Below are positions 4,064 to 60,800 of a stretch of 64,000 nucleotides of DNA, one piece after another. The notes under the pieces are model-generated. The model was not told where the DNA came from, made no database searches, and saw nothing but the letters and a program-made list of their open reading frames with translations. The stretch comes from Eukaryota sp. TZLM1-RC. Its lineage: Eukaryota > Protista > Metamonada: BaSk clade. The position numbers and the translations under genes are program-made. The stretch's first letter is position 1, and the number at the start of each line of letters is the position of its first letter. The DNA is taken from positions 1,054,001 through 1,118,000 of the forward strand of contig JAUPSS010000006.1 in NCBI GenBank assembly GCA_040285825.1, given 5' to 3'.

Positions 4064-7000
4064 TTTTTTTATTTAAATTTAATTTTATTCTAAACCTATA
4101 AATCAACATCTAAAAAAATCCATCTCTCCCAAAACAAAAACACTAGATGCAACTCTCTCATAGTGAGATCCAAGAGAAAGCAAAGCATCAGAAACCATCT
4201 TCAACATCCCCTTAAAAATAGAAAACACAATTCTATTTTGCCAAAAACAATCTGTTGAAATTTCTGCCAGATCTTCTCTTTACAATCATTTCAAAATCAT
4301 CCAAAAACGTAAAGCAGTTGGTGCAAGTGAACCAAAAAGGGAAAATACAAATGGATACAAATTGTATTTTTGCATGCTGTAGACTGGCCAATTTGGACAA
4401 AGGTTCATTGTATTTTTGAATTTAAAATTTTCAGCATTTGAAAGGGGATTATGAATTTCAGAATTAACAAGCCTTTCATTTGAGGCATTACAAGGATCAA
4501 CAGACATTACATCCAATAAAAATGAAGCTTCCATCTAATCCAGGTAATATGACATCACCTCTATTATTCTTATGAAAATCATTTTCAGCATCAAACAGAT
4601 TTGACAACAAAGGTTCCAAGAAGGATTCAATTCTATGAGATTTACACATACAATATAACTGGTCTCTTACAGCATCATGAACCTTGCTTCTAAAAGTAAT
4701 AAAATGTTTACAATTTAACAAATGAGTAGTTGTAATTTCTCGAGAACATTTACAAATTAAATTATGAGGTAAATTATCAGGCCAGATAAAGGAACGAAAT
4801 CTCATATTCAGAGTCCAAGCAGAATCGGATAAGAGAGTACCATAAACTTGTGGAATTGTTGTTACTAAGGCAGAAGAAGTACTGTCACACATATCTTGTA
4901 AAAGATTTGCAAAAGCGGGATTCTTTTTCTTGGCCAAGCCAAGTCTAACATCAAAATCCAAGCTTTCAAAAATCTTTGACAATTTTTGTTGAAGCTTTTT
5001 ACAGCAAAACTGTAAATTAAATAGAGATCGGTTTGGAATTTCTTGAATTGATTGAGGAAAACATTTGGTCCAAATTTGTGGCGGTAATTTTTCAAGTTCA
5101 CAAGATAACTCATACAAATAGGGACTACAATTTTTTTTTTAAAAAAACTGGAATATTTATTGAGATAAAAATAACCATCTAGAATTCAATATCCTCCAAA
5201 CAAGCGTCACTATTACTGAACCTACTCACAGCATTACGTTCATATTCTACACCAATAGCTAAAAGTGCCTTTGAAATCATTGTTGGAATAGACTTGAAAA
5301 TGCAAAAAACAATTCTATTTAACCAGAAAGTGGAGTTCATTGTTTTACCAGACCTATTCAGTAACACTTTTTTAAAATTTTCCAAAAAGTGCAAGCCTGA
5401 AGGTCCAATATTGCCAAAAAGAGAAATTGCAAACGGCACAAACTGATATTTCACATGTTCCACTCTACCTAACTGTGCCAAAGGTTCTTCATATTTTTTT
5501 ATCTTCTTTTTTTCGGCGTTAGATAACGGCGAGTCAGCGGAATACACTAAACGAGCAGCAGAATTTTTGCAAACATCCACTGAGACAACGTCTACAACAT
5601 TGAGAACACCATCGATCCCTGGAGCTACTAAATCTGCCCTTCTTTTACCAAAGGAATCATCAGTTTGATCTGAAGACAGCTTACGTACTAGTGGCTCAAT
5701 AAATGCCTCTATATTGAAACTTTTTGCACATGGCATATAATTGATCACGAACTGAGTCATGAACAAGTGAGCGATAAGTTATGAAATACTTACAGTTTAA
5801 AATATGGGAAAGCGTAACAACACTCTTGCAGCGACAAATTAAATCATTTGGCAATGAGCAAGGCCATAGAAAACATCTCAATCTCATTGCAGTGGTCCAT
5901 TGGTGATCATTAAGTAGAAGGCCGTAAATGTTGGGAATTTGGGAGATTAAGCAACTTGAGCAACTGTCTTCAAGATCAATCAAAAAGTTTGCAAAAACGG
6001 GATTTTTTTCCTTAGCCAAGCTAAGACGTACAATATAATCCAAGTTTTCTAAAACTTTCAAAATTTTTTCTGCAATTTTGCAAAAGTCAATGGTAAGGAG
6101 AGCAAGCTTCTTGAAGGAAGTTCCACAATATCAGAGGGGAAACATTTAGCCCAAATATTGGGTGAAAGAGTTTCAATTTCCTGTTGCAAAGAAATAAGAT
6201 AGGAGCTGCCACAATTTTCAATGAGATGAATTTTTTCAGGAAAACGATTCACAAATTCATAAATAAAATTCTTTCCACCTCCAATAAAGGCAGCTTTACA
6301 AAGGTAGCTTGACTTATGAAAATCAACACCACCAAAATTTGTACCACAAAAAATGTGGCTTCGTAACTGAGATGCATCAATTTCCAATAATTTTGCTAAA
6401 AAATTAGTTCTTTGTTCATTAAAAATGCGACAGAACTCCAAGGAAATTGATGGTGATGTTGATCTCAAAATATGAGTAAATTTTCCAGAATAACAGATTT
6501 TGAGGAAAAAGAATTTCAAATGTTTCTCAATATTTAAATTTTCTATTGATTCTAATTCATTTCCAAATTGAGTCAACAGAGTCGAAAGTTGGCTTTTCAC
6601 TTCATCAATATTGAAGGAAGTTCCACAATATCAGAGGGGAAACATTTAGCCCAAATATTGGGTGAAAGAGTTTCAATTTCCTGTTGCAAAGAAATAAGAT
6701 AGGAGCTACAATTGGGGACTAACAGATGAGAATCATCAGGAAATCTACGAGAAAATTCATAAATAAAATTTTTGCCACCACCCAAGAATGCTGATTGACA
6801 CAAAATTGAAGATTTAGTAAAACCAATACCACCCAAATTTGCTGAAGAAAATAAATGGCTTTTCAACATTCCTGGTTCTACATCCAATAAATCAGCAAAA
6901 AATTCTGTTCTCAATGAATTAAAAGAACGACAAAAATCTAATGCTATGGAAGGAGCACAAGATCTCAAAATGTGGGTTATTCTCCCAGTGTAGCAAATTT

Positions 7001-45937: not shown

Positions 45938-48038
45938 TGAACCTTTGTCCAAATTGGCCAGTCTACAGCATGCAAAAATACAATTTGTATCCATTTGTAC
46001 TTTCCCTTTTTGGTTCACTTGCACCAACTGCTTTACGTTTTTTGGATGATTTTGAAATGATTGTAAAAAGGTGTTGGATTCAATTCATCAAAATATTTGA
46101 CCAAAGCTGCATTTATTGGTGGTGGAAAAAATTTTGTATTTGAATTCTCTAGAAGATATCCTTTTGCCGAAAATCTTCTTGAAACTACAAATAGCTTATT
46201 CCTCGATAACTTAAGAGAAGAAATATCCAGTTTATCTCCCGACTTATGGCAATCATGTTTCCCCATATCCATTCAAGAAATTCCAGACAGAAGTTTGTAT
46301 TCATTAAAATTTGCGTTGAAAAAGCCCCAACGACATCTTTTGAGAAAATTTGAAAGCAAGGATTTTATTGTTCGACTTAGCACGGCTAAGAAAGAAAATC
46401 CTGCTTTTGCAAATTTTTTGATTGATTTGAAGGACAGTTCATCTGCAGTTTTGATAAATCAAATTCCCCAGATTTTTGGCCTATTTTTGAATGACGACCA
46501 ATGGACCACTGCTATGAGAATGCGTTGTTATTTATGGCCTTGTAATTTGCCCAATGATTTGTTTTGCAAATTGTGGAGCTGGTTTAACATTATCACATTT
46601 ATTTAATTGTAATAGATTTATTTCCTATCGTTCTACGTTGCATGATGCAGTCAGAGATCAAATCCATGCAATGTGTAATTCCTATCATATTGAATCTTTT
46701 GTAGAACCTTTGTTGAGGTCTCTTGATATAAATGAAAGCGTAAGAGATTCAGAATATGGAAAACGACGTGCTGATGTTGTTGTGCCCTCGTTTGATGATG
46801 TCATGAATGTTGTTGATGTCGTAACAGTGGATGTTTGCAAGAAAAATGCCTTGAAAAATGCTCAATCTGAAGTATCCCCCCTTGATGACTCCGAATTGTA
46901 CAAACGGAAAAAATATGCAAATCCTTTAAAAGAATTGAAACATGTTCGCCATGTAGATTACCAAATTTGCCCATTTGCTATATCGTTGTATGGTCGTCTT
47001 GGAAAAACTGCTATGAATTTTATTGATGATTTTGAAAATCTTGTGAAAAGAAGAATGAATAAGCGTTTTGATCGTCGCTTGTGGCTAAATCGTATTGTTT
47101 TTACTATTTTCAAATCAATTCCTAAAATGATTTCGAAAGCTTTGATGTCTGTCAGTGCACATTACGAAGAAATTGCTGTTGTGTGGTTTGATGGTGTGGA
47201 AGCTTGTTTTGAAGATATTGACTTTTAGACTGTAGTTTAACAATAAATTAAAATTTTTCATTAAAAAAATACAATGAACCTTTGGATTTTGATGTTAGAC
47301 TTGGCTTGGCCAAGAAAAAGAATCCCGCTTTTGCAAATCTTTTACAAGATATGTGTGACAGTACTTCTTCTGCCTTAGTAACAACAATTCCACAAGTTTA
47401 TGGTACTCTCTTATCCGATTCTGCTTGGACTCTGAATATGAGATTTCGTTCCTTTATCTGGCCTGATAATTTACCTCATAATTTAATTTGTAAATGTTCT
47501 CGAGAAATTACAACTACTCATTTGTTAAATTGTAAACATTTTATTACTTTTAGAAGCAAGGTTCATGATGCTGTAAGAGACCAGTTATATTGTATGTGTA
47601 AATCTCATAGAATTGAATCCTTCTTGGAACCTTTGTTGTCAAATCTGTTTGATGCTGAAAATGATTTTCATAAGAATAATAGAGGTGATGTCATATTACC
47701 TGGATTAGATGGAAGCTTCATTTTATTGGATGTAATGTCTGTTGATCCTTGTAATGCCTCAAATGAAAGGCTTGTTAATTCTGAAATTCATCATCCCCTT
47801 TCAAATGCTTTTTTTTATAATTTAATTTTATTCTAAACCTATAAATCAACATCTAAAAAATCCATCTCTCCCAAAACAAAAACACTAGATGCAACTCTCT
47901 CATAGTGAGATCCAAGAGAAAGCAAAGCATCAGAAACCATCTTCAACATCCCCTTAAAAATAGAAAACACAATTCTATTTTTTTTGGAGAATTTTTTTTT
48001 ATTAAATGAGCTAAATACTACGACAATTCAGAAATTCC

Positions 48039-50862
48039 TCATCCAACTACTCCACTACTAGTAGTCAATACTCCAAAAAGACACTGAACAACCAGCACAA
48101 AACCAAAAAGTACATGATTGACATTACTAAGCGGCCGTCTGGGATGCTCCAAGAGCGTTTTAAAGGCGACAGCAAGCTTTTTATCACACATACGATTATT
48201 TGAACCAGCAACAACATTTTTTTTTAATTTTAATTTTATTCAAAACCTATAAATCAACATCTAAAAAATCCATCTCTCCCAGAACAAAAACACTAGATGC
48301 AACTCTCTCATAGTGAGATCCAAGAGAAAGCAAAGCATCAGAAACCATCTTCAACATCCCCTTAAAAATAGAAAACACAATTCTATTTTGCCAAAACAAT
48401 CTGTTGAAATTTCTGCCACTTCTTCTCTTTACAATCATTTCAAAATCATCCAAAAAACGTAAAGCAGTTGGTGCAAGTGAACCAAAAAGGGAAAATACAA
48501 ATGGATACAAATTGTATTTTGCATGCTGTAGACTGGCCAATTTGGACAAAGGTTCATTGTATTTTTTGAATTTAAAATTTTCAGCATTTGAAAGGGGATT
48601 ATGAATTTCAGAATTAACAAGCCTTTCATTTGAGGCATTACAAGGATCAACAGACATTACATCCAATAAAATGAAGCTTCCATCTAATCCAGGTAATATG
48701 ACATCACCTCTATTATTCTTATGAAAATCATTTTCAGCATCAAACAGATTTGACAACAGAGGTTCCAAGAAGGATTCAATTCTATGAGATTTACACATAC
48801 AATATAACTGGTCTCTTACAGCAACATGAACCTTGCTTCTAAAAGTAATAAAATGTTTACAATTTAACAAATGAGTAGTTGTAATTTCTCGAGAACATTT
48901 ACAAATTAAATTATGAGGTAAATTATCAGGCCAGATAAAGGAACGAAATCTCATATTCAGAGTCCAAGCAGAATCGGATAAGAGAGTACCATAAACTTGT
49001 GGAATTGTTGTTACTAAGGCAGAAGAAGTACTGTCACACATATCTTGTAAAAGATTTGCAAAAGCGGGATTCTTTTTCTTGGCCAAGCCAAGTCTAACAT
49101 CAAAATCCAAGCTTTCAAAAATCTTTGACAATTTTTGTTGAAGCTTTTTACAGCAAAACTGTAAATTAAATAGAGATCGGTTTGGAATTTCTTGAATTGA
49201 TTGAGGAAAACATTTGGTCCAAATTTGTGGCGGTAATTTTTCAAGTTCACAAGATAACTCATACAAATAGGGACTACAATTGGGGACTAACAGATGAGAA
49301 TCATCAGGAAATCTACGAGAAAATTCATAAATAAAATTTTTGCCACCACCCAAGAATGCTGATTGACACAAAATTGAAGATTTAGTAAATCCAATACCCC
49401 CCAAATTTTTTTTTTTAAAAAATTTAATTTTTATTCTAAACCTATAAATCAACATCTAAAAAAATCCATCTCTCCCAAAACAAAAACACTAGATGCAACT
49501 CTCTCATAGTGAGATCCAAGAGAAAGCAAAGCATCAGAAACCATCTTCAACATCCCCTTAAAAATAGAAAACACAATTCTATTTTGCCAAAACAATCTGT
49601 TGAAATTTCTGCCAGTTCTTCTCTTTACAATCATTTCAAAATCATCCAAAAACGTAAAGCAGTTGGTGCAAGTGAACCAAAAAGGGAAAATACAAATGGA
49701 TACAAATTGTATTTTGCATGCTGTAGACTGGCCAATTTGGACAAAGGTTCATTATATTTTTTTGAATTTAAAATTTTCAGCATTTGAAAGGGGATTATGA
49801 ATTTCAGAATTAACAAGCCTTTCATTTGAGGCATTACAAGGATCAACAGACATTACATCCAATAAAATGAAGCTTCCATCTAATCCAGGTAATATGACAT
49901 CACCTCTATTATTCTTATGAAAATCATTTTCAGCATCAAACAGATTTGACAACAAAGGTTCCAAGAAGGATTCAATTCTATGAGATTTACACATACAATA
50001 TAACTGGTCTCTTACAGCATCATGAACCTTGCTTCTAAAAGTAATAAAATGTTTACAATTTAACAGATGAGTAGTTGTAATTTCTCGAGAATTTCCCCCC
50101 AAATTTGCTGAAGAAAATAAGTGACTTTTCAACATTCCTGGTTCTACATCCAATAAATCAGCAAAAAATTCTGTTCTCAATGAATTGAATGAACGACAAA
50201 AATCTAATGCTATGGAAGGAGCACAAGATCTCAAAATGTGGGTTATTCTCCCAGTATAGCAAATTTTAAGCATGAAAAATTTAATATGCTTTTCTATATC
50301 TAAAGAAGAAATTGAATCAAGTTCAATTTTCATTTTTTCCAAAATAACTTGCAATTCATTCTGAATTTGAGGCACATTTCCTAACCAACAACCAAGGAAC
50401 TTAAAAGCATCACTACTATAATTAGTAAAAGGGACAATAGAATCGTTTATCACGAGGTCTTGAGCAGAAGAGCCAATCAACATCCAATAAGAAGAGTGAG
50501 AATTCTATCTCAAGAACAACTATCCAAACCTTCAGTAAACAGATCACAAACTTTCTGCTTCCATTACTTAGCGGCCGTCTGAGAAGCTCCAAGAGCGGTT
50601 TAAAGGCGACAGCAAGCTTTTCATGAGAAGAGAAATGCGAACATCTGCTGATGGTCAAGTCAAATTGAACAAGAAACAAAATGCTTGTGAGAAGGGAACT
50701 AATGTGTCTCCAAATTGATGTTTCAAAGGATGATGTTATCAATGGAAAAACATTCAGTAGAGTCAACAAAGAAGAGGGAGACAACGTAGAGCAGTATGGA
50801 ATAATTGTTAAGAAAGCAATAGGAGGGCCTGGACCGTGAAAAGGGAGGTTTTCAACAATCAT
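48039..50862 (-). CDS. Reconstructed 185-aa hydrophobic ORF of element G (50862-50478 joined to 48211-48039); function unknown
   Basis: After removing the nested insertion and one CAACAT TSD copy, the frame runs MIVENLPFHG..FLLDV-VAGSNNRMCDKKLAVAFKTLLEHPRRPLSNVNHVLFGFVLVVQCLFGVLTTSSGVVG*. Confidence 0.5.
48122..48181 (-). repeat. 60-nt internal repeat of G, downstream copy
   Basis: 56/60 identical to 50562-50621. Confidence 0.9.
48218..50477 (-). mobile_element. Family A copy inserted in G, itself interrupted by A(-) 49409-50094
   Basis: TSD CAACAT at 48212-48217 and 50478-50483; inner TSD CCCCCCAAATTT at 49397-49408 and 50095-50106. Confidence 0.88.
50562..50621 (-). repeat. 60-nt internal repeat of G, upstream copy
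   Basis: CATTACTTAGCGGCCGTCTGAGAAGCTCCAAGAGCGGTTTAAAGGCGACAGCAAGCTTTT on the + strand. Confidence 0.9.
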
Positions 50863-53800
50863 GATGGAGAGGAAGGAAGTTCGACGCGGAAGGGGGGAAG
50901 AAAAAAAAGGCAATTCTATTTTGCCAAAACAATCTGTTGAAATTTCTGCCAGTTCTTCTCTTTACAATCATTTCAAAATCATCCAAAAAACGTAAAGCAG
51001 TTGGTGCAAGTGAACCAAAAAGGGAAAATACAAATGGATACAAATTGTATTTTGCATGCTGTAGACTGGCCAATTTGGACAAAGGTTCATTGTATTTTTT
51101 GAATTTAAAATTTTCAGCATTTGAAAGGGGATTATGAATTTCAGAATTAACAAGCCTTTCATTTGAGGCATTACAAGGATCAACAGACATTACATCCAAT
51201 AAAATGAAGCTTCCATCTAATCCAGGTAATATGACATCACCTCTATTATTCTTATGAAAATCATTTTCAGCATCAAACAGATTTGACAACAGAGGTTCCA
51301 AGAAGGATTCAATTCTATGAGATTTACACATACAATATAACTGGTCTCTTACAGCATCATGAACCTTGCTTCTAAAAGTAATAAAATGTTTACAATTTAA
51401 CAAATGAGTAGTTGTAAATTCTCGAGAACATTTACAAATTAAATTATGAGGTAAATTATCAGGCCAGATAAAGGAACGAAATCTCATATTCAGAGTCCAA
51501 GCAGAATCGGATAAGAGAGTACCACAAACTTGTGGAATTGTTGTTACTAAGGCAGAAGAAGTACTGTCACACATATCTTGTAAAAGATTTGCAAAAGCGG
51601 GATTCTTTTTCTTGGCCAAGCCAAGTCTAACATCAAAATCCAAGCTTTCAAAAATCTTTGACAATTTTTGTTGAAGCTTTTTACAGCAAAACTGTAAATT
51701 AAATAGAGATCGGTTTGGAATTTCTTGAATTGATTGAGGAAAACATTTGGTCCAAATTTGTGGCGGTAATTTTTCAAGTTCACAAGATAACTCATACAAA
51801 TAGGGACTACAATTCAAATGCTGAAAATTTTAAATTCAAAAAATACAATGAACCTTTGTCCAAAATGGCCCCTCTACAGCATGCAAAATACAATTTGTAT
51901 CCATTTGTATTTTCCCTTTTTGGTTCACTTGCACCAACTGCTTTACGTTTTTTGGATGATTTTGAAATGATTGTAAAGAGAAGAACTGGCAGAAATTTCA
52001 ACAGATTGTTTTGGCAAAATAGAATTGTGTTTTCTATTTTTAAGGGGATGTTGAAGATGGTTTCTGATGCTTTGCTTTCTCTTGGATCTCACTATGAGAG
52101 AGTTGCATCTAGTGTTTTTGTTTTGGGAGAGATGGATTTTTTAGATGTTGATTTATAGGTTTTGAATAAAATTAAATTTTAAAAAAAATGAACCTTTGTC
52201 CAAATTGGCCAGTCTACAGCATGCAAAATACAATTTGTATCCATTTGTACTTTCCCTTTTTGGTTCACTTGCACCAACTGCTTTACGTTTTTTGGATGAT
52301 TTTGAAATGATTGTAAAAAGGTGTTGGATTCAATTCATCAAAATATTTGACCAAAGCTGCATTTATTGGTGGTGGAAAAATTTTGTATTTGAATTCTCTA
52401 GAAGATATCCTTTTGCCGAAAATCTTCTTGAAACTACAAATAGCTTATTCCTCGATAACTTAAGAGAAGAAATATCCAGTTTATCTCCCGACTTATGGCA
52501 ATCATGTTTCCCCATATCCATTCAAGAAATTCCAGACAGAAGTTTGTATTCATTAAAATTTGCGTTGAAAAAGCCCCAACGACATCTTTTGAGAAAATTT
52601 GAAAGCAAGGATTTTATTGTTCGACTTAGCACGGCTAAGAAAGAAAATCCTGCTTTTGCAAATTTTTTGATTGATTTGAAGGACAGTTCATCTGCAGTTT
52701 TGATAAATCAAATTCCCCAGATTTTTGGCCTATTTTTGAATGACGACCAATGGACCACTGCTATGAGAATGCGTTGTTATTTATGGCCTTGTAATTTGCC
52801 CAATGATTTGTTTTGCAAATGTGGAGCTGGTTTAACATTATCACATTTATTTAATTGTAATAGATTTATTTCCTATCGTTCTACGTTGCATGATGCAGTC
52901 AGAGATCAAATCCATGCAATGTGTAATTCCTATCATATTGAATCTTTTGTAGAACCTTTGTTGAGGTCTCTTGATATAAATGAAAGCGTAAGAGATTCAG
53001 AATATGGAAAACGACGTGCTGATGTTGTTGTTCCCCCGTTTGATGATGTCATGAATGTTGTTGATGTCGTAACAGTGGATGTTTGCAAGAAAAATGCCTT
53101 GAAAAATGCTCAATCTGAAGTATCCCCCCTTGATGACTCCGAATTGTACAAACGGAAAAAATATGCAAATCCTTTAAAAGAATTGAAACATGTTCACCAT
53201 GTAGATTACCAAATTTGCCCATTTGCTATATCGTTGTATGGTCGTCTTGGAAAAACTGCTATGAATTTTATTGATGATTTTGAAAATCTTGTGAAAAGAA
53301 GAATGAATAAGCGTTTTGATCGTCGCTTGTGGCTAAATCGTATTGTTTTTACTATTTTCAAATCAATTCCTAAAATGATTTCGAAAGCTTTGATGTCTGT
53401 CAGTGCACATTACGAAGAAATTGCTGTTGTAAGGTTTGATGGTGTGGAAGCTTGTTTTGAAGATATTGACTTTTAGACTGTAGTTTAACAATAAATTAAA
53501 ATTTTTCATTAAAAAAATACAATGAACCTTTGGATTTTGATGTTAGACTTGGCTTGGCCAAGAAAAAAGAATCCCGCTTTTGCAAATCTTTTACAAGATA
53601 TGTGTGACAGTACTTCTTCTGCCTTAGTAACAACAATTCCACAAGTTTATGGTACTCTCTTATCCGATTCTGCTTGGACTCTGAATATGAGATTTCGTTC
53701 CTTTATCTGGCCTGATAATTTACCTCATAATTTAATTTGTAAATGTTCTCGAGAAATTACAACTACTCATTTGTTAAATTGTAAACATTTTGTTACTTTT

Positions 53801-54382: not shown

Positions 54383-57300
54383 TTATTTTTTTTGGTTATT
54401 ATATTTTTATTCAACAACAAATATGAAATACACAATTAAAACTCCACATCCTCAAAACCTGCCTCCCCTACATCAAAACAATTAATCGCTAAAGATTCAG
54501 AAAATTTCCCAAAAGAAGATAGTGAATCAGAAATTAGTGTTACGATTCCCTTAAAAATAGAAAATACAATCCTGTTTTGCCAGTAAACACGATTGAAAAT
54601 TCTTCCAGTTCTTTCCCTTACAACTACAACAAAATCCTCAAGGAAAGCCATAGCAGCCTTACCTAGAGATCCAAGCAAAGAAAAAACAAATGGACATAAA
54701 TTATATTGGGCATGAGAATTTTCATTAACCGAGGAAATGGGTTTCGCATATTTAGCAATTTTATATTTTTCGCCTGCAAGAAGAGGATTATTTACATCCG
54801 AGTTAATGAAATGTTTGTTAGAGGAATTACAAGGGTCAATAGACATGGCGTCCAAAATAGTAAAACTACCATTTAAACCGGGAACAACTAGATCACCTCT
54901 AGTCAAACCCATAGAAGCTCTGTTGTAACGCGTACTATCAATATTGGGATCATCAAGAATTAATTTTGATAACAGCGGTTCTAAAAAGGAATCTACACGA
55001 TATGATTTGCACATTACATAAATTTGGTCCCTGACGTTATTATGCACTTTGCTTCTATACGTAATGAAATGTTTACAGTTCAAAAGATGAGTAAACAAAA
55101 GAGGTTTACCACATTTACAAGTTAAATGATTGGGCAAATTGTTTGGCCACAGAAAACAACGAAAACGCATGTTTAAAAGCCATTCATTGTCTTTTAGCAA
55201 AAGTCCATAAACAGAGGGAACTTGAGTTACTAAAGCAGCAGCAGAACTATCACGAATATCCTTTAAAAAATTACCGAAAGCGGGATTTTTAGTTTTGGCC
55301 AAGCCAAGTCTTACTTCATAATCCAAGCCTTCATATAATTTAACCAGATGGTGCTGAAGCTTTTTCAAGCAAAAACGTAAATTTGGAAGTGATCGAGTGG
55401 GAATTTCTTGAACGTTTTGAGGAAAACACTGAATCCAGATATCACTAGGCAAATTTTGTAATTCAAATTGCAGTTGATTCAAGTAAAAATTTGATTCACC
55501 ATTGATCAGATGAACATCAAAAGGGAACCTTTGGAAAAATTCAAAAACAAAATTTTTACCACCTCCCAAAAATGCTGCTTTACACAGAATCGAAGATTTG
55601 GTGAATCCAATTCCACCCAAATCTGCTGAACAAAATACATGACTTCGAATTAAAGATTCATTTACTTCTAATAAAAAAGAAAAAAATTTGACTCGAAGTT
55701 TGTTAAAAGATCTGCAAAAATTGAGAGATACCGAAGGGGGAGTTGACCTTAAAATATGAGTGAATTTTCCAGAATAACAAATTTTTAAAATAAAAAATTT
55801 GATGTGTTTCTCAATGTCACATTCAGCGATAAAACTAAGATCCTTGTCAAACTTCTCCAATAAATTGTTTAACTGGGAATAAATTTCATCCAAATTGCCA
55901 AGCCAACATCCAAGAAACTTAAAAAGCTTGTTGGTCATAATTGATAAAAGGAATCTGAGCTCCACCAATCATCAAAGATTGTTTTTCTCTACCAATCAAG
56001 AGACATTTAGATGGGTTCAAAGCTAAACCAATTTCTTTGTATTTCGCCGCAATGTCTTCAGAAACCCTAGAAATGCTTTCAAAAGAACCAATAATAGAAA
56101 TGTCATCCATATAGGCAACAATACGCAAATCAGGGAAATCTTGTTGTGTCATTTTAATAATATTATGAATAGCCAAACAAAACAGCAAAGGGCCAAGAGG
56201 ATCACCTTGTTTCACACCAGAAGAAGATTCAAGGGTAAAGGAGTCAAAAATTAAGTCTGATTTTTTCCATAAAATAAATAAAAATATGCAGAAAGTTCAG
56301 GAAAATCATGAAGAAGCACATCAAAAATACAATCACGTTTCACAGAATTGAAAGCATTTTTGAAATCCAAATTGAAAATATATTGATGTTGTTGACTATT
56401 GAAAAAAACATCTGAAGTCATTGAAGCAACAGAAGCACCTTCAACAGTTTTTATACCAAATTGGAAAGGCTTCAAATAGTCCCTTGCTTTAGTAGAAATT
56501 CTGTTGAAAATAAGTGAAGAAAGCAATCTGGTTAATGACTCTCCAATAGCAATTGGTCTAACTCCATCAGGCTTGTCACCTTTACCAGGTTTAACTAAAG
56601 CAACTAAACGGGCAGCAGTCAATTCATGCGGAGGAACATAATTCAAACACATTAAATTTTGAAAATAGGAAGCAAGATCCTCACAAATTTCAGGAGCATT
56701 TTTACAGGCAGTTTTCAACAAATCAAAGGAAATGCCTGAAGGACCAGCAGCTTTTCCTTTTGGTAATTTAGCAACGGCATTCAATACTTCTTGAGCCTGA
56801 AATGGATTTTCGAGCCAATATTGACAAATAGAAGGCCTACTGGGGCAAAAATTTTCAGTTGGATGGAGGGATTTTAATTTTCAACAGTTTCGAGATTGTT
56901 ATCAGCCAGTTTTCCCGAAAAAATATTTTTTAATCCGCTTCCATATCTACCTCTCAAAAACAATTTTCTTGCCTGAAAAGATGAATTAGCTTTTCCCTGT
57001 TTTGGTTTGTAATTAATTTTCTTCTTATTCTTTTTGGCAAAGAATTTCCAAAATCTTGTTATGTTCCATTTGTTTAATTTCAATTGCGAAGAAAAAGAAC
57101 GCATTTCCATTGACAAAGGAACAGAACTGGCAGGACTCACCTCTACAGGAATTTTAACAGGTGTACGAAGAGAATCACTTGTTTGACAGTCATAACAAAA
57201 CAATAGAGGGCGACCATTAGAAGAATTAGAGAGGAACTTTTTGCAAAAAGGACAACTATGCTTCAAGAAATTATCCGTAGGATCAGGAGCAACAGTTTTT

Positions 57301-57802
57301 GGTAAATGAGTTTGATCAATATTTAAATCATAATTAACATCATCAGCAGAAACATTGGGAACAGGAGGAAGATTTAGTTCGGATGGCGTTTGCAAACTAT
57401 TAACAATAGAAATATTGGTTTTCAGTCTCATTTTTTCGGTAATAATATCAGGACATTTTCTAATGTTATGACCAACCTTGCCACATTTGGAACAAGTATA
57501 TCTTCTTTTTTGCACTTTTTCAGGCGTAATATCAGGGGCATCACACAAAGGCAAAAAGTCTTTTTTAAAAATTTTCAAATTTTTTTGAGAAGAATTTCGA
57601 GCATAGCTTGAAGGGTGGGGAGAGTGGAGAAGTGAAGGGGATGAGCTTGATCTGATGGGTAGAATCTTTGCTTGGGTGTTCCAATCAGTATCAGAGTCAC
57701 TGTCAGTCACTGGCATCGTTTTGGCAAAGACACAGTACGACTGTGACTCCGTGACAGAAAGTGAAATATGAGAGGGTTGACTAAGGGAGGGAGAAAAAAA
57801 AA
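54383..57802 (-). mobile_element. Family E full-length RLE non-LTR retrotransposon (3.42 kb)
   Basis: Oligo-pyrimidine 5' end, about 85-nt 5' UTR, single ORF, AATAAA plus A-tail; TSD ATTTAT at 54377-54382 and 57803-57808. Confidence 0.93.
54436..57716 (-). CDS. Family E polyprotein (about 1090 aa: CCHC knuckle, Cys4 motif, RT, CCHC finger, RLE); breaks fall at homopolymers
   Basis: CSKCGKVGHNIRKC; CPFC..CYDC; DGVRPIAIGE; LDFKNAFNS; KQGDPLGP; AYMDD; KFLG; CKCG..HLLNC; RGDLVVP; EKYKIAKY; ..AGFEDVEF*. Confidence 0.9.
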
Positions 57803-60800
57803 ATTTATAGGTTTTGAATAAAATTAAATTTTAAAAAAAATGAACCTTTGTCCAAATTGGCCAGTCTACAGCATGCAAAATACAATTTGTATCCATTTGT
57901 ACTTTCCCTTTTTGGTTCACTTGCACCAACTGCTTTACGTTTTTTGGATGATTTTGAAATGATTGTAAAAAGGTGTTGGATTCAATTCATCAAAATATTT
58001 GACCAAAGCTGCATTTATTGGTGGTGGAAAAAATTTTGTATTTGAATTCTCTAGAAGATATCCTTTTGCCGAAAATCTTCTTGAAACTACAAATAGCTTA
58101 TTCCTCGATAACTTAAGAGAAGAAATATCCAGTTTATCTCCCGACTTATGGCAATCATGTTTCCCCATATCCATTCAAGAAATTCCAGACAGAAGTTTGT
58201 ATTCATTAAAATTTGCGTTGAAAAAGCCCCAACGACATCTTTTGAGAAAATTTGAAAGCAAGGATTTTATTGTTCGACTTAGCACGGCTAAGAAAGAAAA
58301 ATCCTGCTTTTGCAAATTTTTGATTGATTTGAAGGACAGTTCATCTGCAGTTTTGATAAATCAAATTCCCAGATTTTTGGCCTATTTTTGAATGACGACC
58401 AATGGACCACTGCTATGAGAATGCGTTGTTATTTATGGCCTTGTAATTTGCCCAATGATTTGTTTTTGCAAATGTGGAGCTGGTTTAACATTATCACATT
58501 TATTTAATTGTAATAGATTTATTTCCTATCGTTCTACGTTGCATGATGCAGTCAGAGATCAAATCCATGCAATGTGTAATTCCTATCATATTGAATCTTT
58601 TGTAGAACCTTTGTTGAGGTCTCTTGATATAAATGAAAGCGTAAGAGATTCAGAATATGGAAAACGACGTGCTGATGTTGTTGTTCCCCGTTTGATGATG
58701 TCATGAATGTTGTTGATGTCGTAACAGTGGATGTTTGCAAGAAAAATGCCTTGAAAAATGCTCAATCTGAAGTATCCCCCTTGATGACTCCGAATTGTAC
58801 AAACGGAAAAATATGCAAATCCTTTAAAAGAATTGAAACATGTTCACCATGTAGATTACCAAATTTGCCCATTTGCTATATCGTTGTATGGTCGTCTTGG
58901 AAAAACTGCTATGAATTTTATTGATGATTTTGAAAATCTTGTGAAAAGAAGAATGAATAAGCGTTTTGATCGTCGCTTGTGGCTAAATCGTATTGTTTTT
59001 ACTATTTTCAAATCAATTCCTAAAATGATTTCGAAAGCTTTGATGTCTGTCAGTGCACATTACGAAGAAATTGCTGTTGTAAGGTTTGATGGTGTGGAAG
59101 CTTGTTTTTGAAGATATTGACTTTTTAGACTGTAGTTTAACAATAAATTAAAATTTTTCATTAAAAAAATACAATGAACCTTTGGATTTTGATGTTAGAC
59201 TTGGCTTGGCCAAGAAAAAGAATCCCGCTTTTGCAAATCTTTTACAAGATATGTGTGACAGTACTTCTTCTGCCTTAGTAACAACAATTCCACAAGTTTA
59301 TGGTACTCTCTTATCCGATTCTGCTTGGACTCTGAATATGAGATTTCGTTCCTTTATCTGGCCTGATAATTTACCTCATAATTTAATTTGTAAATGTTCT
59401 CGAGAAATTACAACTACTCATTTGTTAAATTGTAAACATTTTGTTACTTTTAGAAGCAAGGTTCATGATGCTGTAAGAGACCAGTTATATTGTATGTGTA
59501 AATCTCATAGAATTGAATCCTTCTTGGAACCTTTGTTGTCAAATCTGTTTGATGCTGAAAATGATTTTCATAAGAATAATAGAGGTGATGTCATATTACC
59601 TGGATTAGATGGAAGCTTCATTTTATTGGATGTAATGTCTGTTGATCCTTGTAATGCCTCAAATGAAAGGCTTGTTAATTCTGAAATTCATCATCCCCTT
59701 TCAAATGCTGAAAATTTTAAATTCAAAAATACAATGAACCTTTGTCCAAATTGGCCAGTCTACAGCATGCAAAATACAATTTGTATTTTCCCTTTTGGTT
59801 CACTTGCACCAACTGCTTTACGTTTTTGGATGATTTTGAAATGATTGTAAAGAGAAGAACTGGCAGAAATTTCAACAGATTGTTTTGGCAAAATAGAATT
59901 GTGTTTTCTATTTTTAAGGGGATGTTGAAGATGGTTTCTGATGCTTTGCTTTCTCTTGGATCTCACTATGAGAGAGTTGCATCTAGTGTTTTTGTTTTGG
60001 GAGAGATGGATTTTTTTAGATGTTGATTTATAGGTTTTGAATAAAATTAAATTTTAAAAAAATGAACCTTTGTCCAAATTGGCCAGTCTACAGCATGCAA
60101 AAATACAATTTGTATCCATTTGTACTTTCCCTTTTTGGTTCACTTGCACCAACTGCTTTACGTTTTTGGATGATTTTTGAAATGATTGTAAAAAGGTGTT
60201 GGATTCAATTCATCAAAATATTTGACCAAAGCTGCATTTATTGGTGGTGGAAAAAATTTTGTATTTGAATTCTCTAGAAGATATCCTTTTGCCGAAAATC
60301 TTCTTGAAACTACAAATAGCTTATTCCTCGATAACTTAAGAGAAGAAATATCCAGTTTATCTCCCGACTTATGGCAATCATGTTTCCCCATATCCATTCA
60401 AGAAATTCCAGACAGAAGTTTGTATTCATTAAAATTTGCGTTGAAAAAGCCCCAACGACATCTTTTTGAGAAAATTTGAAAGCAAGGATTTTATTGTTCG
60501 ACTTAGCACGGCTAAGAAAGAAAAATCCTGCTTTTGCAAATTTTTGATTGATTTGAAGGACAGTTCATCTGCAGTTTTGATAAATCAAATTCCCCAGATT
60601 TTTGGCCTATTTTTGAATGACGACCAATGGACCACTGCTATGAGAATGCGTTGTTATTTATGGCCTTGTAATTTGCCCAATGATTTGTTTTTGCAAATGT
60701 GGAGCTGGTTTAACATTATCACATTTATTTAATTGTAATAGATTTATTTCCTATCGTTCTACGTTGCATGATGCAGTCAGAGATCAAATCCATGCAATGT

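Follow-up and report, generated by a model that had tools for sequence, protein, structure and literature searches.

A likely mRNA-like, non-autonomous retroposon family among the LINEs of Eukaryota sp. TZLM1-RC, with a 185-codon open reading frame apparently not under selection

Introduction

HAL1 (half-L1) and Drosophila HeT-A are non-autonomous elements that keep one open reading frame (ORF), a recognisable ORF1/Gag homologue under selection, and take reverse transcriptase (RT) from another element. Mammalian snoRTs and platypus snoRTEs are derived from small nucleolar RNAs (snoRNAs); they are A-tailed, flanked by target-site duplications (TSDs) and mobilised by long interspersed nuclear elements (LINEs). 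Here we describe G, a retroposon in a 64,000-nt stretch of contig JAUPSS010000006.1 (the window, positions 1,054,001 to 1,118,000) of the metamonad Eukaryota sp. TZLM1-RC. The functionally closest known system is EhSINE1 of Entamoeba histolytica, a short interspersed nuclear element (SINE) of about 500-600 bp whose partner is the RLE-type EhLINE1 and whose polyadenylated transcripts are abundant (PMC2996970).

G is likely a copy of a lineage-specific, RT-less, mRNA-like family of non-long-terminal-repeat retroposons of about 650-660 bp in Skoliomonas (Eukaryota sp. TZLM1-RC), whose 185-codon ORF is not under selection. Draft genomes of Skoliomonas litria and its relatives are reported in a paper in which the isolate name TZLM1-RC is not used (PMC11316075). 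Like EhSINE1, G is non-autonomous, TSD-flanked and without a tRNA, 7SL or 5S head, and it lies beside RLE-type LINEs in an anaerobic protist (PMC2996970); polyadenylation of G transcripts is indicated by anatomy. The two differ in that EhSINE1 has no plausible ORF (PMC2996970) whereas ORF makes up 84% of G, and in that the internal repeat measures 26-27 nt in EhSINE1 and 63 nt, within a 174-nt period, in G.

Structure of the nested insert

As shown in Table 1, G consists of two minus-strand halves set inside a LINE family-A copy and is itself cut by a later LINE. The initial annotation had taken the two stretches for halves of one insert, and this is borne out: both junctions could be read, with a 12-bp TSD for G and a 6-bp TSD for the inner LINE, and the halves are contiguous at 13 of 13 other loci. 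The minus-strand host LINE resumes at the right copy of the 12-bp TSD, CAATTCTATTTT, and the same 12 bases stand uninterrupted in a neighbouring LINE copy, which represents the empty target. The inner LINE has CAACAT on both sides. Removal of this LINE and one copy of CAACAT leaves a rejoined G of 663 nt. The window records two successive events, the insertion of G into a LINE and the later insertion of another LINE into G.

Reading of the rejoined insert confirmed the proposed layout of a leader, an ATG-to-TGA frame that stays open across the junction, AATAAA and an A-tail. The pyrimidine-rich leader of 48 nt begins with CC, T8 and CTTCCCCCCTTCC. It is followed by a frame of 185 codons (126 codons, one junction codon and 58 codons) and, after TGA, by 57 nt with AATAAA, A9, a TTCTCC tag and a terminal A-run. 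The terminal A-run merges with the A-rich TSD, and the exact boundary is ambiguous. A 63-nt core occurs twice in G, 174 nt apart and with 92% identity; the doubled peptide motif noticed initially is present because this core is repeated. Within the window, G matches itself only; this is an indirect check of the initial statement that no other non-LINE stretches are present.

A listed 321-residue ORF (50852-51817, minus strand) is a chimera, which runs from the C-terminal coding region of the host LINE into the G leader and stops there. It marks the point at which G cut the LINE ORF, after ...FWQNRI.

Table 1. Positions of G, its flanks and related LINE features in the window
Feature	Position	Strand	Remarks
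Left TSD copy, CAATTCTATTTT	47970..47981	.	within the host LINE family-A copy; same 12 bases at 48380-48391
G as a whole	47982..50910	-	two halves
G 3' part	47982..48217	-	A-run 47982-47985; TTCTCC 47986-47991; A9 47992-48000; AATAAA 47998-48003; TGA 48039-48041; 58 codons 48042-48215; second core 48122-48184
Junction codon of G	50484 + 48217-48216	-	
Later insertion, 5'-truncated RLE-type LINE, family A	48218..50483	-	LINE 48218-50477; A9 tail 48218-48226; ORF 48247-49455; TSD CAACAT at 48212-48217 and 50478-50483
G 5' part	50484..50910	-	leader 50863-50910; ATG 50860-50862; 126 codons 50485-50862; first core 50562-50624
Right TSD copy (12 bp)	50911..50922	.	
LINE family E 5' terminus, T10 CTCCCTCCCTT	57783..57803	-	sole LINE sequence resembling G; about the 20 first bases of G
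LINE 3' ends with the AATAAA layout, examples	719, 3484, 25854, 38476	+	
LINE 3' ends with the AATAAA layout, examples	47809, 44497, 27962, 54386	-	

Copies of G and their insertion marks

Protein searches were made with the N-terminal piece of the window copy and with naturally contiguous relatives, and the two halves were joined for local comparison only. The search with the N-terminal 126 residues returned four protein clusters, all annotated as "hypothetical protein P9112_..." of Eukaryota sp. TZLM1-RC. The cluster listing holds 12 distinct proteins (P0001-P0012), eight of them 185 residues long. The corresponding loci (L001-L013) lie on nine contigs of assembly GCA_040285825.1 and align with rejoined G over about 650 nt, uninterrupted, at 90.2-98.6% identity. 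Locus L022, a human-gut metagenome contig, was excluded from the comparison. L004 and L005 are one insertion duplicated as DNA (3.3 kb), with element, TSD and flanks identical. The family therefore comprises the window copy, 12 further independent insertions and one DNA-level duplicate, that is, at least 13 independent insertions with the window copy included, and the multi-copy nature considered initially was upheld.

L004 and L005 (JAUPSS010000007.1, 1184036-1192887) are identical G copies 3,294 bp apart with the same flanking ORFs of 139 and 219 residues. They result from the tandem duplication of a segment of about 3.3 kb, which took the retroposon with it, and for this reason KAL0208329.1 and KAL0208332.1 are two accessions of one protein.

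TSDs of 12 bp flank the window copy, L004 and L006; those of L001, L008 and L012 measure 14, 10 and 11 bp, and that of L013 10-14 bp. The TSD is about 7 bp at L007 and L011, and no clear TSD is seen at L002, L003, L009 and L010. Full-length copies begin with a T-run, while L004, L007 and L011 are 5'-truncated; L006, L008 and L011 have 12-25 nt of filler where their 5' ends meet the flank. Near the other end all copies share a conserved ...TTTAATAAA and a few A. Usually a tag of 3-12 nt comes next, then usually A8-12, then the TSD; the exceptions are L003, without a tag, and L002, with a 22-nt stretch and no A-run. The tail always starts 8-14 nt downstream of AATAAA.

Two of the loci have unusual surroundings. 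At L007 (2440-2490) the 5'-truncated G stands head to head with a 5' terminus of LINE family E, with 7 nt between them; this could be a nested insertion at one spot or a joint formed during integration. At L009 (2380-2455 and 3125-3190) G lies between two copies of a direct repeat that measures about 46 nt (ATCTATTAATAATGGCAAATT...), and these copies are not equally far from its two ends. The insertion probably went into a local tandem repeat, and because of this no clean TSD can be read there.

A maximum-likelihood tree of the shared body separates an old group (L010, L011 and L012, with branches of 4-6%) from the clade of the window copy, L013 and L004, and from a third clade with bootstrap 99, in which L002 and L009 stand together with L001, L006, L007 and L008. 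The 3' tags follow the tree. TTTAC, with the longer form TTTACGAG in three copies, is found only in the bootstrap-99 clade, GTCC and TTCTCC are the tags of the clade of the window copy, and each of the three old copies has one tag of its own. Because the tags are clade-specific, they suggest that several G copies, and not one master, served as sources. Terminal branches measure 0.3-1.6%, which suggests that the family has been active recently. Word depth on G was about 14-29, compared with about 2-3 for contigs that seem copy-specific (three Logan contig sets, one sample); these values suggest roughly ten young copies, as a rough figure only. No joint across the inner LINE was found in the Logan contigs, which are 150-780 nt long and too short to bridge it.

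L012 (2460-2930, protein P0004) is a variant with one core: the sequence lost between the 63-nt cores amounts to exactly one unit of 174 nt. It shows that the cores recombine with each other. The number of internal repeats also varies in EhSINE1, where it gives rise to length classes, and the initial comparison of the internal repeat with EhSINEs thus proved apt.

Relation to the resident LINEs

Apart from the 5' terminus, no similarity of G to any LINE was detected in the window and loci, about 135 kb in all (blastn, tblastx and tblastn, masked), and G is not a deletion derivative of any of these LINEs. When the G ORF was compared with all LINE copies of this set, no match was found at E values up to 1-10 (tblastn, tblastx). 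The initial statement that RT is absent from G agrees with these searches and with the lack of any Pfam match of the ORF. At the 3' end nothing is common to G and the LINEs of the 135 kb beyond AATAAA and an A-run. EhSINE1 differs in this respect from G, which has only the 5' terminus in common with one LINE family.

Two described classes were rejected on this and related evidence. G is not an ORF1-only LINE derivative of the HAL1/HeT-A type, as its ORF is unrelated to LINE proteins (tblastn, tblastx, Pfam); these elements resemble G in their borrowed RT and single ORF, but the G ORF has neither similarity to LINE ORFs nor the selection found there, with omega of about 1. Nor is it a canonical SINE, as it has no polymerase III-type head (ARAGORN and Rfam found no tRNA, 7SL or 5S) and no 3' tail shared with a LINE is present in the 135 kb.

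The shared 5' terminus links G to LINE family E. G begins with T8 CTTCCCCCCTT and family E with T7-10 CTCCCTCCCTT, so that both have a T-run followed by CTYCCYCCCTT. The 5' ends of family E were seen at 57803 in the window and at L007, L009 and L011. In the whole window, no pyrimidine run of 15 nt or more that includes five or more C occurs outside the 5' ends of E and G, and across the 13 loci a related pyrimidine pattern was likewise confined to these ends. This suggests a shared start signal, or a shared handling of 5' ends, for G and E. Family E may be a relative or a partner of G and is regarded as a candidate; the shared terminus by itself proves neither.

The 3' ends of the window LINEs have the layout of G, with AATAAA, 9-14 variable nt and A8-12 (examples in Table 1), and their candidate TSDs are for the most part close to 11 bp, within a range of 10-17. 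The LINE ORFs of the window contain recognisable RT and RLE motifs, and RVT_1 was called on genes neighbouring G loci; Pfam assigned no family to the LINE ORF fragments. We infer that G and the LINEs are alike polyadenylated at a site set by AAUAAA, and that flank bases of a source copy with a short old tail are read in and then inherited.

On this basis transcription of G would resemble that of an mRNA and would begin at the 5' terminus of the element, whose oligo-T and C-rich motif is otherwise found only in LINE family E, and the transcript would be cleaved and polyadenylated 8-14 nt past AAUAAA. Copying into A/T-rich targets would take place by target-primed reverse transcription, with an endonuclease and RT supplied in trans by the resident RLE-type LINEs. 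Where the cleavage site lies beyond an old A-run, a few flank bases of the source copy would become a permanent, inherited tag. The dispersed TSD-flanked copies, the A-tails, the 5' truncation and the lack of an RT of its own all support the non-autonomous poly(A)/TSD retroposon seen in G at the outset; the step in trans is suggested circumstantially by the 5' terminal motif shared with family E and by the 3' layout and TSD range of the local LINEs.

Processed pseudogenes and 3' transductions made by L1 show a similar picture. The mRNA-like anatomy, poly(A) dependence, TSDs and 5' truncation are alike, and in L1 3' transduction flank bases past the poly(A) signal of the element itself are carried onward as well. 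However, G propagates itself from several sources while L1 pseudogenes are dead-on-arrival copies of one gene, and the tags of G are only 4-10 nt long. L1 enzymes are APE-type, those of the LINEs described here RLE-type.

Substitution pattern of the 185-codon frame

The G frame arose before any of the subfamilies, and 9 of the 13 independent copies still have it intact. The four broken frames are interrupted in four different places: L010 has a 1-nt deletion, L011 a stop at codon 146, L013 a stop at codon 113, and L012 deletions of 174 nt and 3 nt together with a 1-nt insertion. Random breakage among copies had been set as the refutation of a coding role. Only about 3% of mutations make stops in the A-poor strand, and intact frames at 1-6% divergence are therefore expected under neutrality.

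Substitutions were compared with a null in which each change is placed randomly on a site with the same base. Among all 150 ORF variants, 41 are synonymous (41.4 expected), 107 non-synonymous (103.6 expected) and 2 stop-creating (5.0 expected), corresponding to omega (dN/dS) of about 1.04. The 36 variants present in at least two copies, which inform on source lineages rather than on dead copies, comprise 12 synonymous (10.4 expected), 24 non-synonymous (24.5 expected) and no stop-creating changes (1.0 expected), with omega of about 0.85. Variable sites are spread over the codon positions as 48/49/44. The Nei-Gojobori (NG86) estimate of dN/dS is 0.74 in frame compared with 0.69 and 0.59 in the wrong frames, and the wrong frames also behave like the true one in substitution counts. 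An omega of 0.5 would give about 66 synonymous changes and is rejected for all variants. A protein-coding gene under selection is not supported, since no synonymous excess is present and the wrong frames look alike.

Homology and structure searches gave no support for a protein either. The proteins of the G family have no Pfam family and no PDB relative. No confident fold was obtained: the ESM Atlas model has a predicted local distance difference test score (pLDDT) of 0.48 and neighbours with template-modelling (TM) scores below 0.5 throughout, and AlphaFold2 with the family alignment gave pLDDT 46.7 and a predicted TM score (pTM) of 0.32. HMMER searches of 1.8 billion representatives returned the family itself and one weak orphan only.

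The G ORF is not maintained as a protein now, and a protein function is not supported. With frames broken at different places in 4 of 13 copies, omega of about 1.0 and no homologue, domain or confident fold, the "possibly protein-coding" part of the initial annotation gains no support. The ORF is most likely a relic of the founding mRNA or of an open tandem-repeat unit, which gene finders have annotated as hypothetical proteins.

Alternative explanations

Several observations weigh against the retroposon with an unselected ORF favoured above. The copies were found via annotated ORFs, so the sample favours intact frames and cannot serve as a census. L002, L003, L007, L009 and L010 are missing a clear TSD or a terminal A-run. 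TSDs of G measure 10-14 bp, compared with only about 5 bp for the sole complete E copy here and 6 bp for the inner A copy. A run of 200 open codons has a probability of about 5e-4 in 20,000 composition-matched simulations, and the other two sense frames of G contain 17 stops each; something once held the frame open, or still does. Moderate constraint in the source lineage (omega about 0.5) is compatible with the 36 shared variants. The transcription start, the poly(A) site and the polymerase are read from anatomy only. The caution given initially, that a T-rich, A-poor strand makes long ORFs easier to obtain, holds in part: composition accounts for some of the length, and the frame is still longer than it predicts.

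This excess length is the first argument for a functional ORF, which would encode a small hydrophobic protein of two or three helices for mobilisation or for the host, or would have to stay open for RNA stability or ribosome binding. The frame also fills 84% of the transcript and ends 57 nt ahead of the tail, is older than all subfamilies and survives in most independent copies, and it has hydrophobic segments (residues 104-132 and 156-185) and a base periodicity by codon position; the shortage of stop-creating variants, 2 against 5, has P = 0.11. We nevertheless consider such a function unlikely. For all variants together omega is about 1.0 and for the shared ones about 0.85, no different from the wrong frames, the differences between the 63-nt cores are all non-synonymous, and no domain, named homologue or confident fold was found; in addition, the frame retention at this divergence is the neutral expectation and comes from copies biased to intact ORFs.

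Somewhat less probable is that the frame is kept open for translation itself with the residues irrelevant. G would then be a translated, decay-proof pseudo-mRNA with its tail held beside ribosomes, and the 63-nt core, which is conserved as nucleotides and recurs in the tandem repeats of the metagenome protein P0013, would be the functional RNA part. If this were true, the 200 stop-free codons and the omega of about 1 would both be explained, and G would hitch onto the LINE enzymes.

A small-RNA origin is about as improbable: a small non-coding RNA gene present in tandem copies, such as a C/D-box snoRNA cluster or the transcript hosting it, would have given rise to the body of G, and the "protein motif" would be a nucleotide motif read as protein. 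The similarity between the two 174-nt units is 92% in the core and about 53% in the remainder, and every difference between the cores alters the residue, so that the core has been conserved or converted as nucleotides. In Rfam searches of an intact copy, unit 1 matched the C/D snoRNA snoR71 over the full length. This match includes a terminal stem and a D box (CUGA), but its C box is broken and its score of 21.8 bits (E 0.05-0.1) is far under the gathering threshold of 40 bits. Unit 2 opens with a perfect GUGAUGA in most copies but lacks a D box. A third, degenerate unit upstream has weak support at the DNA level (z = 3.4, P = 0.003) and none at the protein level. Against such an origin, RNA folding of the core on both strands was no better than shuffles (z -1.0 to +0.3). 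Rfam gave nothing on the window region and no tRNA, 7SL or 5S match on the intact copy even at E up to 10, and ARAGORN found no tRNA. The core 19-mer, searched in 241 million metagenome records, hit 13 loci with chance matches of 19-27 nt, none of them rRNA-like.

The weak orphan returned by HMMER, P0013 (E 1.4e-4), bears on the same idea. This Joint Genome Institute (JGI) metagenome protein carries the G motif in three tandem units of about 60 residues, in register with the units of G, and its reading frame shifts between units, as in ORFs called over non-coding repeats; its relatives P0014 and P0015 likewise have the motif in tandem units of about 60 residues with frame changes between them. 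P0013-P0015 are orphan ORFs on JGI metagenome contigs of 1.3-1.4 kb from an AT-rich organism, and they probably overlie a tandem DNA repeat related to the G core. Wider protein searches (P0013, joint alignment) reached only the JGI orphans P0014 and P0015, and metagenome tblastn for P0013 relatives found none. Descent of the G body from a small-RNA gene array may thus be taken as a lead, not as a finding. A small-RNA-derived core would recall the snoRTs and snoRTEs, from which G differs in having no canonical C/D or H/ACA unit and a sub-threshold match only.

A one-off processed pseudogene of a host mRNA, the other possibility named initially, has the mRNA-like anatomy in its favour (short leader, one ORF, AATAAA, A-tail, TSD) but is refuted by the 13 independent insertions with subfamily structure and heritable 3' tags, and no distinct parent gene exists among the annotated same-genome proteins: every match fetched as DNA was a retroposed copy, and no remoter or intron-bearing relative was found. 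The founder of the family, in contrast to the single copy, may have been a host mRNA.

Consequences for annotation and further observations

G, then, is not the protein-coding "hidden passenger" first proposed, and its use lies in annotation and in the tracing of source copies. At least 13 GenBank gene models (KAL0211096.1 and relatives, "hypothetical proteins") are mobile-element copies and should be masked or flagged; such models inflate the orphan-gene count in a lineage that is used for deep eukaryote evolution. An ORF can be significantly long even though its substitutions are fully neutral, and ORF length alone is therefore a poor coding criterion in T-rich repeats.

The favoured reading also makes G look like a polymerase II-type, mRNA-like non-autonomous retroposon of a free-living metamonad, where it works alongside RLE-type LINEs. 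Source copies can be traced by the heritable micro-tags, and nested, datable insertions, G in a LINE and a LINE in G, provide relative ages for LINE-only domains of the genome.

The variable 3' bit of the LINEs differs among copies of one family (TTTT, TTTTTT, TTTAAAT, TTAT, ATTTTGGT...) and may be a lineage tag for LINE source copies, as in G. Besides G, the 100-bp tiles without a second match in the window fall in the 5' half of LINE E (55401-57800) and in one LINE copy at 5201-6600; the remainder of the 64 kb is repeated LINE sequence.

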